Source: Adineta vaga
Taxonomy: Eukaryota > Animalia > Rotifera
NCBI GenBank assembly: GCA_021613535.1
Contig: CP075492.1
Location: 7,998,001 to 8,062,000 of the forward strand
Reading direction: 5' to 3'
Length of the DNA: 64,000 nt
Part shown: positions 34,052 to 39,256 of the stretch, one piece after another
Layout: each line of letters opens with the position of its first letter
Position numbering within the stretch: the first letter of the stretch is position 1
Position numbers and translations under genes: made by a program
The notes under the pieces: model-generated
Told to the model about the DNA's origin: nothing
Databases searched by the model: none
What the model saw: only the letters and a program-made list of their open reading frames with translations

Positions 34052-34590
34052 TTAACTTGTTTCCATATCTTTAAAATTTTTCACACTTTCTTCATATTTT
34101 TCTAATACAATTGAACACATTTGTTTTAAATCTACGAGACCTTGACGAAATATATCGAGAGCTGGTACTGCTGTTGAATCTTCATTGATTTTTGATTGAA
34201 TTCGAAAATTAATTTTCGATTCAGATGGATGTGGTATTGTATATCCACAAAAATCTACAGCTGGATTTTTCATAATAATATATCGAAGTGAATTACCTAA
34301 TGTATGATCTTCATCGCGAATAATAAATGAAAGATTTGGTGCACCAACAGTTGATTTGGCATTGGTACTATCATCAACTGGGCAAACTTGTAATTTTACA
34401 TAATCATTCGATTGCATCTAAAATAGAAATGGGAACATAAAAACTATTTGCACAATCTCTAGAGATTTAGAACTTAGAACAATCACTGTCATATCTGATT
34501 GAGAATTATTCTTTGGTGATGTATTATTGGATGTCTTAGATATAAGATAGTGTGAGAAAAAAAGTCTACTTCAATCTTTTCAATCATCAT
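34052..34590 (-). CDS. POLR1D: RNA polymerase I/III subunit RPAC2 (AC19)
   Basis: FIIRDEDHTLGNSLRYIIMKNPAVDFCGYTIPHPSESKINFRIQ. Two small in-frame 5' exons (MMIEKIE | TSNNTSPKNNSQSDMT) are inferred from splice sites. Confidence 0.92.
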
Positions 34591-34694
34591 CTAAGAATAG
34601 AAAAGGAAGATTGTAACATTGTTTCTTTTGTTCTATAACTATGATTTTATTCAGTAAGAACGGAGAAAATAATAAAATATAGACTGCAGTTTAA

Positions 34695-37259
34695 TTAGAC
34701 AGCTAATTCAGCTGCTTTTGTTGTATTTGATGCGATGATCAACGCAAAGTTATTTAAGATGGGTTCGACTTCACGTGAAATAAATTCATAAACCTAAACA
34801 AGAGAAGTAAATCAATATTATGGAAAAAAATCTTTAAAATTTCGTTTACTTGTTCAGGTGCTCGACCAATGAATGTTTTCGAATCGAGAAGAACATCTAA
34901 TTTATTGACAATCGGTGTAAAATAAGGATCCGCTTTAACACGTTCAACAAGATCATTATCTAAACCATCAATTTTCACTCGTTCAGCAGCTTTCTGAGAT
35001 AATGTACGAATCTTTTCATGACATTCTTGACGATTACCACCAGCAGAAACCTTAACAAAAGATATTATTTTATAAAGTTTCATTTGTCTAAAAAAAGCAT
35101 CTACCATTGCCATGATTATATTTTCCGTTGCCATAAATGGTAGTTCTTGTTTAATATGTTTATCAATAACCTATATTGAAGAAAATTATGAACATTCAAT
35201 TCATAAAAAAATTCTTGTCTTACTTTTGGATAAACTACTAGACCTTCAGTAATATTCAGTAAAGTAAAAAGAATAATATCAGCAGTTAAAAAAGCTTCGG
35301 GAATACATATGCGTCTGAAAAAAGAAGACAAAATCGAAGTTTTAAAAAAAGAACAAAAGATCGAATTGATGGCATATTTACTTGTTCGCACTATCATCTA
35401 ATGTTCGTTCCATCCATTGTACGGAGTGAGTTCCAAGTGGATCATTAATTAAAGTCATTAGATGACGTGCAAGTGCACAGCATCGTTCACATCTCATTGG
35501 ATTACGTTTATATGGCATCGCACTTGAGCCTATCGTTTTGTTGAAGACAACAAAATATATTTTCATTCTCAATTACAAATAAATCATACCAATTTGTTCG
35601 ATTTCAAATGGTTCTTCAATTTCTTTTAAACTTGCTAATAAACGAATATCAGTACACATCTATTAATTAAACAAAAACAACGAAATGATTCGTTTTTCAC
35701 TCATGAACCGAAGCATTACCTTGTGAATTGATGTTCCAAAACTGGAAAGAACACTGACTACTTCCACGTCAAGTTTACGTGTATATGTTTGACCACAAAT
35801 AATAAAAACTCTAAATAAAAAAAAACACACATTTTTCAAATGATCACGTAGATGTTTATGAAAAATTTTTATAGTATCAATCATCGAAAGAATTTCACTT
35901 GTTTTTCTTTAAAATATTTGAAATAAGTCAATAAATTACTTTGAAAATCCAGCCATTTCTGATACCATTCGATCCAATTCTTCGACCTACGCACAAGCAA
36001 AATAAAATGAAATTGTCGTTTTTTCAAACATTTCTCTTCATTCTTATACTTTTGAATGATCTCCATTAAATAATTGTAAAAATGATGCTTGAGTGCCAGT
36101 TGTACCTTTTACACCACGAAATTTTAATTGTCGTTTAACTCGTTCGAAATTTTTCAGATCCATTAATAAATCTTGAATCCATACACATGCTCGTTTTCCT
36201 ACAGTAGTTAATTGTGCTGGTCTATGAAAGAAGAAAGAAAAATAAATGCATAACATCCTATGAATACAAAATGATATACACACTGCATATGAGTATAACC
36301 CAATGTTGGCAAACAAGCATAGTCTTGTGCAAATTGAGTCAAACGTTGAATACATCGAACGAGCTAAGTATCCGAATGATTATAAATGAAAGACAAAAGA
36401 AGTATCCTATATGCTTACTTTAGTAATTAAAATCTCAAATCCATCTCTCATTACAATTAAATCCTAATTGAAAATAAAGTCCCTATAAATGAAAGATAGT
36501 TTTGTAATGATATCACTTACTGCATTGTCACCGACAAAAGCTGAAGTTGCACCAAGATGAATAATTGATGATGCTTTAGGACAACAACGTGCAAATGTAT
36601 GCACATGAGCCATGACATCATGTCGTCGACGACGTTCTTCCGCTTCAGCAATATCAAAATCAATATTTGTTAAATTTTTTTCCATTTCTTCTAATTGCTC
36701 ATCAGTTATATCCAAACCTAATTGCTACAAATATAAGACATGTTGATCGTTATTTTAAAAAAAACTTAAAATAATTTACTTTTTGACACTTTGCTAGCCA
36801 AAACCACAGACGTCTCCAGGTAGAAAATTTCTTAACTTCACTAAAATTATAGCTCATTTCAGCAGATGCATAACGTGAAACTAAGGGTGAACGATATTTT
36901 GACCGTTCATCAAGTGATACCGACGAGAAAGATACATTTTGATCCCTGCCTGTACTTCCATTTGATATACTCGGAGGACGACTTAGTTTCAATGATACTT
37001 GTTCTTGTAGACCGATTGAAAGTGATTCCGACTGAGATGGACGTCGACTATCATGGGCTGTTCCTGTATGTTCTGACATCTAAAAAAAAACAAGATTAAA
37101 AGGACTAAAACTCAAGACGATAAGCTTTTTTTTCGTTTGCGCGTCTTCGATTTGATGTAGTATCGAAGTCTATAAAACCAGACATAATATATTTACGTGC
37201 ATATCTGCACGTCTTACATATGCAAATGAGTTACTTCTAACTTTTTTTTTCTCTTTCAT
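34695..37259 (-). CDS. ADSL: Adenylosuccinate lyase
   Basis: [64 protein letters not shown] and the fumarate-lyase signature [11 protein letters not shown]. Start is either ATG 37079 or an in-frame mini-exon MKEKKK at 37259. Confidence 0.96.
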
Positions 37260-37412
37260 TCTTTCAGATTTCGAAACTGCTCCGAAGCAAAGCGATTATT
37301 TACTAGAAGTATAGAATAGAAAAGAAGAAGAAGAAAAAAAACACATCGACTAAGACATTCTTTTTTATTTATTTGTTTATTTGTATGAGAATAAGAGAAA
37401 ATGTTTTTAGGA

Positions 37413-37931
37413 TCATTTGGTATTTGTAAAGTGATGCGAAAGTAAATTAACAATTTGTTGTTCATCATTGATTTGCATATGTGAATGAAACATCGAGGGA
37501 AGATTATCGCCATCAGCCCAAATAATTGTTAATGATTGATTTGAATTATTTGATGTAGAAAATTTTGGCATTTGACTATAGATTAAAGTATCCTTTAATG
37601 ATGAATGGCGAAATGTTCGAATGGATAATTGATTACGAAATTGTCCGATTAAATCAAGAATCGCTGTTGAAGGCTTTGTAGCTTGAAGATGAATGACTAA
37701 TTCTTCACGATTAGCTTGATTTGCTGTTGTATTTTGATAGAGAAGAACTTGATTATATAAATATTCAATTCTTTCAAGTAAAGTATCTTGACGTTTTATA
37801 ATATCTGCTAATGCTGATTCATTCGTTGTTTGAGTAGTATTTGTTTGTTCAATAATTGGTTTAACTGAATACATTGTCGTAGGTAAATTCAAATCGATAG
37901 TATTTGAACTATGAGGACGAATTGAATACAT
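37413..37931 (-). CDS. AIMP2: AIMP2/p38 (multi-tRNA-synthetase complex scaffold), short form
   Basis: MYSIRPH...LPTTMYSVKPI matches the two LysRS-binding motifs (human MYQVKPY...LPTCMYRLPNV); LADIIKRQDTLLERIEYL matches the leucine zipper; FRHSSLK and SLTIIW match the thioredoxin-like domain. Recognised from memory. Confidence 0.78.
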   Translation of the reverse strand: MYSIRPHSSNTIDLNLPTTMYSVKPIIEQTNTTQTTNESALADIIKRQDTLLERIEYLYNQVLLYQNTTANQANREELVIHLQATKPSTAILDLIGQFRNQLSIRTFRHSSLKDTLIYSQMPKFSTSNNSNQSLTIIWADGDNLPSMFHSHMQINDEQQIVNLLSHHFTNTK

Positions 37932-38023
37932 ATTCTTTATCTAGAACAAAACAAAATATTAAACGATTGTTTTCTTTTCTTATGAAATCGTATTCGAAAG
38001 AATTCGAGACTTTTTTATTTATT

Positions 38024-39256
38024 TTAATTAGTGGATGATTTTTTTTGCATATGTTGAGCAAATGTTTGCGCAACAATTAATGGAAATATCAATGTTGCAT
38101 CACCATGAACTTTAACAGGTTTTGCAACTGAACGAATTTTACCCCATGATATAGCTTCATCAGGACTTGCACCCGAATCGGAGCCATCATATTCTGAACC
38201 TGTATTGATATAAACAGCATAATCAGCACCATTACGCATTAAATTAGCATTACCTACAAAAAAAATACAGTACCTACAGTACAAATGTACTTAAAATCTT
38301 AGAAGTACGTGCCGATAACACACAATCATAAAACATATAGTAGTAAAGATATCAAAATTTCAATAAATCACGTCATAGTGCATCGAATATAGAATCTCAA
38401 TTATAATGTGCCCATCGTCCTCTCTTCCACAGACATTTAACTTACAGATATGATGTTTAACAATTCCACCGCCTAAAATCAACATTCCAGTTGATTTAGC
38501 ATGTACAGCTAAATTATTGATCTTTTTTAAATCTTCTAAAATATCAATTTTTAATCCTGGTTTACGATAAGAATGGAAATAAAGCATATCGCCTAAACTT
38601 CCATCAGTTATGGCTGGACAAAAAACAGGTATTTCATTTTTAGCACACCAATAATAAATTGATTCTTCATTATTAATTTCTTTACCAAGTTTTTCAATTA
38701 ATTTCGATGGTGTTAAAATACAATTACCATTATTTTCATCAACAAAACGATCCAATATTGGCATTAACCAATCTTCAAATTTGCAATAATTTGTATTTGG
38801 TACTAATAAATTTCCAATACGATTGACACCATTGGCTCGTAATTGTTGTCCATTTAATGTAAATTCACCAACATATGTCGGTGCTAAACATTTAATAAAA
38901 TCTTCTTCAACTCCACCGGCAGTTGTGACAAGAATATGCACGAGTTTATGTTGACAAAGATAACGTATAATATCTCGACATCCGCTTGAGACCATATTCG
39001 ATGTATAACCAAAGAAAATTATCGAATCCGTTTCAAGCATAGATTCAATTTGTTGACATGCTTGACCGAAATGTGTGGCTTGAAAGCCTGTTGATGAATA
39101 TGAACGTAAAAGATTAAAATAATCAACTGGTCCAGGCTTATTGAAATCATGACCACGAACAATGAGCTGTGATGAAAGATCAATCGATGTTGATGTAGGT
39201 TTGAGAGCAGCTTCTAGTGCAATTGTCGGAATATTGTCTTTTGTTGTCTCCGCCAT
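38024..39256 (-). CDS. DHPS: Deoxyhypusine synthase
   Basis: [66 protein letters not shown]|[10 protein letters not shown] and [13 protein letters not shown] (catalytic Lys); one intron 38255-38445. Confidence 0.97.

Follow-up and report, generated by a model that had tools for sequence, protein, structure and literature searches.

Conservation and putative spliced-leader acceptors of a co-oriented DHPS, AIMP2-like, ADSL and POLR1D gene cluster in bdelloid rotifers, a candidate operon

The four-gene block and its conservation

The window analysed here, a 64,000-nt stretch of the genome of the bdelloid rotifer Adineta vaga (contig CP075492.1, positions 7,998,001 to 8,062,000), carries four housekeeping genes at positions 34052-39256 of its minus strand. 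An earlier note on this DNA had proposed that they form an operon that is transcribed from one promoter and resolved into single messages by spliced-leader (SL) trans-splicing. The head-to-tail order that it gave, DHPS > AIMP2-like > ADSL > POLR1D/RPAC2, was borne out, and recalculation confirmed its distances of 92, 108 and 104 nt. Our analysis points to an old, conserved and co-oriented unit that would be transcribed at least partly as polycistronic RNA. The genes are as follows.

39256..38024, minus strand: DHPS (deoxyhypusine synthase), two exons, intron at 38254-38445; Pfam DS, E values 1.6e-88 and 4.1e-27
37931..37413, minus strand: AIMP2-like gene, single exon, 172 aa
37079..34695, minus strand: ADSL (adenylosuccinate lyase), about 10 introns, mapped by exon-by-exon tblastn against the A. 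steineri and Rotaria genes
34417..34052, minus strand: POLR1D/RPAC2 (subunit common to RNA polymerases I and III), single exon, 121 aa; Pfam RNA_pol_L_2, E value 8.9e-26

Protein searches were run exon by exon, without joined spliced models, and genome searches covered 100.8 Mb in 6 contigs from a bdelloid of the A. vaga type, in which both DHPS and POLR1D are single-copy genes. The ADSL counterparts of A. steineri and Rotaria are annotated with Lyase_1 and ADSL_C, and all A. vaga ADSL exons are matched by the spliced open reading frame (ORF) of an RNA contig from another bdelloid lineage (L039, described below). POLR1D homologues are named RPAC2 in their sources, and nearly all of the Adineta/Rotaria-type ones are 121-122 aa long. 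The second gene was identified through its family: the A. vaga protein matches both AIMP2-specific Pfam domains below threshold, and across the family, matches to AIMP2_LysRS_bd (18 of 18 members) and Thioredoxin_16 (15 of 18) are weak but consistent. The UniRef name of this family is AIMP2 thioredoxin-like domain; a PDB search with the family profile returned no match. A full AIMP2 has a LysRS-binding N-terminus, a thioredoxin-like domain and a GST-C domain; the 172-aa protein has no GST-C, and the gene is best filed as AIMP2-like (AIMP2 below, for brevity).

Gene order was compared at loci from A. steineri (L013, L014), Rotaria magnacalcarata (L015-17), Didymodactylos (L033, L034), twelve metagenome contigs (L019-L030) and five Logan/ENA contigs (L018, L031, L032, L035, L039), with gene calls only for a sixth (P0042 contig). 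A tblastn map recovered the full order DHPS > AIMP2 > ADSL > POLR1D in three deep lineages, namely Adineta (A. steineri), Rotaria magnacalcarata and L020-22, and partial contigs of about 12 further lineages all fit this order (about 15 Adineta/Rotaria-type lineages in total). The surroundings of the block are not the same. LITAF-like genes lie upstream and a DHHC gene downstream in Adineta; in Rotaria, these places are taken by a tetraspanin gene and a minus-strand gene, and in L020 by NHL-repeat genes and an ORF without assigned identity. Thus, in a small sample, Adineta, Rotaria and L020 share all three internal adjacencies, while both flanking adjacencies differ in each. Since the flanks differ while the internal order holds, the four-gene block appears to be the conserved unit.

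Same-strand distances are about 0.6-1.2 kb in the flanks versus 25-440 nt inside the block; the A. vaga cluster is bounded by spacers of 1173 nt upstream and 625 nt downstream. Judged as short spacers between co-oriented genes, the 92-nt DHPS>AIMP2 spacer is a clear case and the other two, of 277 and 333 nt, are borderline. On the same strand, two LITAF-like genes lie upstream of DHPS, and the minus-strand run continues downstream (31102-33426) with a DHHC palmitoyltransferase gene followed by a D-aminoacyl-tRNA deacylase gene, at spacers of about 0.55-0.63 kb.

Gene junctions and putative spliced-leader acceptors

The published rotifer SL (GGCTTATTACAACTTACCAAGAG, taken from Table 1 of PMC3795323) followed by GT occurs 58 times in the genome, compared with 0 times for a reversed control. 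The genome thus has the bdelloid SL, with 58 SL RNA genes. Many of these genes are arranged as head-to-head pairs about 156 nt apart, and minor SL variants are present, such as A for C at SL position 10 and A for C at position 13. The features at the gene junctions and ahead of DHPS are listed below.

39522-39534, minus strand: CTCF-like motif TAGCGCCCTCTAT, 266 nt upstream of the DHPS ATG, kept in six bdelloid lineages
39257..39560, minus strand: conserved region upstream of DHPS, likely first-gene promoter (alignment of six lineages)
39341-39349, minus strand: bZIP-like motif ATGATTCAT, within the conserved DHPS upstream region
38023..37932, minus strand: DHPS>AIMP2 spacer, 92 nt, with AATAAA (38014-38023) in overlap with the stop region, then a TTAAT resembling a branch point and a pyrimidine tract
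37412..37080, minus strand: AIMP2>ADSL spacer, 333 nt, with AATAAA signals at 37364-37381, then a conserved AAAAGAATGY block
37155..37227, minus strand: ADSL-specific conserved non-coding element, palindrome ACGTGCA-GATA-TGCACGT plus TTTTATAGAC
34694..34418, minus strand: ADSL>POLR1D spacer, 277 nt, with AATAAA at 34646-34651

The AATAAA signals described in the earlier note are present as written, each with a pyrimidine tract and AG, and the lack of a strong 5′ donor upstream of the acceptors likewise holds in the A. vaga spacers. Its pairing of acceptor and start codon stands for AIMP2 (37942-41) but not for ADSL and POLR1D, whose conserved acceptors lie at 37081-80 and 34419-18.

At the first junction, the conserved AIMP2 acceptor AG is positioned 9 nt ahead of the ATG. 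The spacer measures 25-123 nt in ten lineages, and its conserved content (10/10 lineages) is TRAY, a pyrimidine tract and (C)TAG/CAG plus AT(A), 2-22 nt before the ATG, and nothing else; the 25-nt version has the pyrimidine tract and CAG alone. In locus L027 (760-830), a DHPS gene without an intron is separated from AIMP2 by 52 nt, which may reflect either intron loss or a spliced bicistronic DHPS-AIMP2 RNA. With no usable cis donor in these spacers, the acceptor is expected to be used for trans-splicing, on a precursor that would begin within or upstream of DHPS. The DHPS homologue search returned no bdelloid product resembling a spliced transcript, most Logan, ENA and JGI products being exon-1-length read-throughs, and no DHPS-AIMP2 RNA contig was found among the products. 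In A. steineri, the 5′ part of AIMP2 (residues 1-64) is additionally repeated in tandem (L013 5694-5873), 87 nt after the DHPS stop and before the intact AIMP2.

This junction bears directly on an alternative in which there is no polycistron. Each gene would then have a compact promoter partly inside the upstream gene or spacer, with a short outron removed by SL trans-splicing, and the packing and kept order would reflect a compact genome in which overlapping regulatory sequences make breakpoints deleterious. The SL is carried by more than half of bdelloid transcripts, operon or not (PMC1925144), so acceptors at start codons would be expected anyway; furthermore, two of the three A. vaga spacers measure 277 and 333 nt, and one has a promoter-like conserved element. 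However, behind a 25-nt spacer, or a 52-nt spacer following an intron-less DHPS, any AIMP2 promoter would sit in DHPS coding sequence, and the DHPS>AIMP2 spacer is conserved only in 3′ splice-site elements. We regard independent promoters as unlikely.

At the second junction, the conserved ADSL acceptor AG (37081-80) follows a T-rich tract and adjoins the ATG at 37079, an arrangement kept in 10 of 10 lineages. This start is the one kept in all lineages and in an RNA contig, and lies 333 nt past the AIMP2 stop. The ATG at 37258, previously placed about 43 nt downstream of AG 37303, begins an ORF of just 29 codons that ends in TAG, and the acceptor AG assigned to it (37304-03) is TG or GA in other species and falls within a conserved TGATAAA block. 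The AIMP2>ADSL spacer measures about 165 nt in L020 and about 240-440 nt elsewhere (for the named species, 333-440 nt); a second, duplicate copy has about 790-840 nt at this place. The argument that there is no room for a promoter is good for the 92-nt spacer but not for the 333-nt spacer, which has a statistically supported conserved element.

The third junction has its conserved acceptor AG (34419-18) adjoining the POLR1D ATG at 34417, and AG directly precedes ATG in every lineage. The length of nearly all Adineta/Rotaria-type homologues, which begin at the position of 34417, fixes the start there, 277 nt after the ADSL stop. The ATG at 34590 favoured in the earlier note is not a conserved start; the 7-codon first exon that it would open was rejected in that role, though it could still be a lineage-specific 5′ exon. 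Its acceptor AG (34592-91) has no AG counterpart in A. steineri; conversely, the upstream AG present in A. steineri corresponds to CAC in A. vaga. The ADSL>POLR1D spacer measures 78-140 nt in lineages outside Adineta, and both Adineta species have about 150 nt extra; this extra stretch is unique in the genome, so a repeat was rejected as its source. It is plausible that spacers of 25-123 and 78-140 nt function without a promoter of their own, and doubtful that the AIMP2>ADSL spacer does. Comparing the spacers for shared exact k-mers yielded no informative signal.

Several further observations concern the 3′ part of the row. A pyrimidine tract, AG and ATG occur again 17-24 nt past the POLR1D stop in L032 (478-545) and L039 (2007-2057). 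The first DHHC exon of L032 begins 47 nt past the stop of POLR1D, compared with 625 nt in A. vaga (at 33426). As read from these contigs, some lineages have a longer and more tightly packed row. Intron content also differs among lineages, L035 (300-330) lacking the last ADSL intron, and A. steineri has a second POLR1D fragment after DHHC (L013 12379-12528).

Ahead of DHPS, about 300 nt contain several conserved blocks and no acceptor at the ATG, a combination that fits a conventional promoter of a first gene. The earlier description of DHPS as lacking an acceptor and having more than 1 kb of upstream space proved accurate (1173 nt to a LITAF-like gene). Read in reverse complement, the CTCF core resembles the motif TAGCGCCCTCTAT, which contains CCCTC; with at most 1 mismatch, this motif has 143 genome matches against 11 for a reversed control. 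This is its sole copy within the window, and it may mark, at the upstream end of the cluster, a boundary or a site for a promoter factor.

With its starts and acceptors corrected, the model of the earlier note would have one promoter upstream of DHPS drive a four-gene polycistron with three SL-resolved genes, and the element ahead of ADSL would be an intercistronic RNA or DNA tuner of processing or expression. It accords with the four-gene block being the exact unit of conserved synteny in three deep lineages with differing flanks, with the conserved acceptors at all three downstream genes and with the fact that, besides the ADSL element, the sole long multi-block conserved upstream region is the one ahead of DHPS. 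Nevertheless, the AIMP2>ADSL spacer never falls below about 165 nt. One promoter for all four genes is doubtful, given a spacer of 165-440 nt in all lineages with an ADSL-specific element in it.

RNA evidence, the ADSL element and transcription units

RNA evidence for SL addition and read-through was obtained from L039, a 2057-nt contig (contig 125765 of run SRR5248463, Logan) from another lineage, with a POLR1D 73% identical. It opens with the final 9 nt of the SL, TACCAAGAG, directly joined to the ADSL ATG, a junction present in none of the genomic loci compared. ADSL follows as an uninterrupted 513-codon ORF, where all genomic copies have introns. Next come an 89-nt spacer with AATAAA and an unspliced TTCAG directly before ATG, a complete POLR1D ORF and a further 51 bases. 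L039 is RNA; in its lineage, SL trans-splicing takes place at the position homologous to 37080/37079, and RNA over the ADSL>POLR1D spacer appears continuous with both cistrons. This RNA also bears on independent promoters, as its assembly requires a POLR1D precursor that starts at or upstream of the ADSL 3′ untranslated region (UTR).

Other contigs were taken as genomic. An SL search of loci L001-L030 returned matches from SL RNA genes only, which identifies the metagenome contigs as genomic DNA. L018, L031, L032 and L035 were rejected as RNA since they keep introns or read into flanking genes.

The ADSL element was characterized using a sequence-only profile of seven lineages, from which both A. 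vaga copies were left out. The profile matches the window at 37155-37227 (42.4 bits, E value 1.4e-12) and the region upstream of a second ADSL copy on contig 6 (8371233-8371325; 52.6 bits), with nothing else significant in 84 kb. In a genome scan, the two ADSL upstream regions were the only matches (150 of 29,080 candidates scored). Across both copies the palindrome reads ACGYGCA-N4-TGCRCGT. The motif AAGACGCGCAA had 16 genome matches against 16 for the control, and this lack of genome-wide enrichment indicates that the ADSL element does not represent a motif of promoters in general.

The second copy lies in a duplicate (ohnologous) block (contig 6, 8365000-8377999; loci L037/L038) with the order DEAD-box helicase > AIMP2 pseudogene (three in-frame stops) > ADSL > no POLR1D > DHHC. 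All exons of this ADSL copy match, and it keeps the element although AIMP2 is dead and DHPS absent. Retention of the element by ADSL despite the decay or loss of its upstream neighbours is the behaviour expected of an ADSL control region, and tells against a single promoter ahead of DHPS.

A role in RNA would suit the single-promoter model better, and the palindrome offers some encouragement: A. vaga has a double change that keeps complementarity, and the changes in the contig 6 copy are G-U compatible. However, the covariation term of RNAalifold is about 0 and several sequences break pairs; Rfam returned no match on 33000-41000 at E values up to 1. The element may be a promoter, an enhancer or factor site, or an RNA hairpin. 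The SL at the ADSL ATG in a relative fits a single promoter too, but would be no less expected if ADSL had an outron and a promoter of its own. On balance, a single promoter for the whole cluster seems to us improbable.

We favour, with moderate confidence, a partly polycistronic cluster in which DHPS-AIMP2 and ADSL-POLR1D are SL-resolved pairs and ADSL has its own control element. The element within a 165-440-nt spacer makes two bicistronic units or a hybrid operon the most likely arrangement. At the tight junctions, DHPS>AIMP2 and ADSL>POLR1D, the upstream message would end at AATAAA and the downstream cistron would receive its capped 5′ end from the SL. Addition of the bdelloid SL at 37942-41 (AIMP2), 37081-80 (ADSL) and 34419-18 (POLR1D) would cut the precursor into single mRNAs. 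ADSL and POLR1D could also be driven from an internal promoter, as in a ‘hybrid operon’, or the cluster could consist of two bicistronic units. By inference, A. vaga would behave like the lineage of L039, DHPS would share a transcript with AIMP2, and the ADSL element would act as a promoter. The central proposal of the earlier note, an SL-resolved operon, thus finds support in the conserved co-oriented cluster, the acceptors, the SL in the genome and L039, but not in two of the acceptor/ATG pairs that it had named.

Several points weigh against the partly polycistronic reading. The spliced-leader and read-through RNA are known from the lineage of L039, not from A. vaga; L039 is one assembled contig, and its support covers the SL joining of ADSL and the ADSL-POLR1D connection alone. 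Assemblers often fuse neighbours with overlapping transcripts, a possible source of L039 if promoters are independent, and de Bruijn assembly in particular can link the 3′ UTR of an ADSL message to a POLR1D precursor that overlaps it, having its start within ADSL. Such a precursor would still have to begin no later than the ADSL 3′ UTR. The 277-nt ADSL>POLR1D spacer of A. vaga has donor-like GT sites 68 nt before the acceptor, so the POLR1D acceptor might now be spliced in cis to a new 5′ exon. The ADSL element, for its part, may be a promoter, an enhancer or an RNA element. Finally, POLR1D sits behind a different gene in Didymodactylos carnosus (L033 5831-10423), 252 nt after a DEAD-box helicase and with a TTTCTAG acceptor directly before its ATG.

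An RPB5 gene lies upstream of that helicase-POLR1D pair on the same strand, in what looks like another co-oriented row. The Didymodactylos helicase is the orthologue of the helicase ahead of the contig 6 AIMP2 pseudogene, and its presence beside both POLR1D and the AIMP2 pseudogene suggests reciprocal gene loss from an older, longer gene row. Taken further, the cluster would be among the first documented operons of Rotifera and would predate the genome duplication of bdelloids, and a row of (DEAD-box helicase or DHPS) > AIMP2 > ADSL > POLR1D > DHHC in the ancestor would have been thinned by reciprocal loss in the duplicates; the ADSL element would then be no promoter but an intercistronic RNA hairpin controlling the processing or translation of downstream cistrons. 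We consider this extended scenario very unlikely.

Comparison with known operon systems

Operons in rotifers are entered as ‘ND’ in PMC2481426 and as ‘not reported’ in PMC7986045 (2021), though rotifer SL trans-splicing is known. A 2025 chaetognath paper names rotifers among the lineages with trans-splicing and operonic transcription, citing earlier work only (PMC12460157), and our literature search on bdelloid and Adineta operons found no later report of a rotifer operon. If documented, such an operon would add a phylum to the short list of those with SL-resolved operons. It would bear on a joint origin of trans-splicing and operons in Gnathifera, as chaetognaths have both, and on the idea that operons aid recovery after an arrest of growth, a matter of interest in desiccation-tolerant animals. 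The genome duplication also provides a natural experiment, in which one copy retains the four genes and the other, of these four, an intact ADSL with its private element.

The cluster resembles the SL2-type operons of Caenorhabditis elegans in its co-oriented, functionally unrelated housekeeping genes, whose order is kept across species, and in the succession of AAUAAA, about 50-100 nt and a trans-splice acceptor near the next AUG. Its longer internal spacer with promoter-like conservation would match the nematode's ‘hybrid’ operons, which have internal promoters. It differs in that bdelloids have a single SL family (table in PMC2481426), none SL2-like having been seen and none looked for, and in that some bdelloid spacers (25 nt) are far below the nematode norm; for A. 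vaga itself, co-transcription is what we infer.

Within Gnathifera, the chaetognath Paraspadella gotoi has 18% of its genes in SL-resolved operons, with housekeeping and metabolic enrichment and no operon-specific SL (PMC12460157). Operons were called there where neighbours lie <250 bp apart and at least one gene bears the SL (PMC12460157). By this measure, the A. vaga DHPS>AIMP2 distance falls within the limit, whereas AIMP2>ADSL (333 nt) and ADSL>POLR1D (277 nt) exceed it. The SL evidence for the bdelloid cluster comes from a relative, and the SL sequences of the two groups are unrelated as far as the papers state.

The tunicate operons of Ciona and Oikopleura share with the bdelloid cluster a single SL type and an acceptor at or nearly at the start codon. 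Their very short or absent intercistronic regions are approached by bdelloid spacers of down to 25 nt, the most compact lineage having no AAUAAA inside the spacer. The A. vaga spacers, in contrast, are longer (92-333 nt), and each has its own AATAAA.

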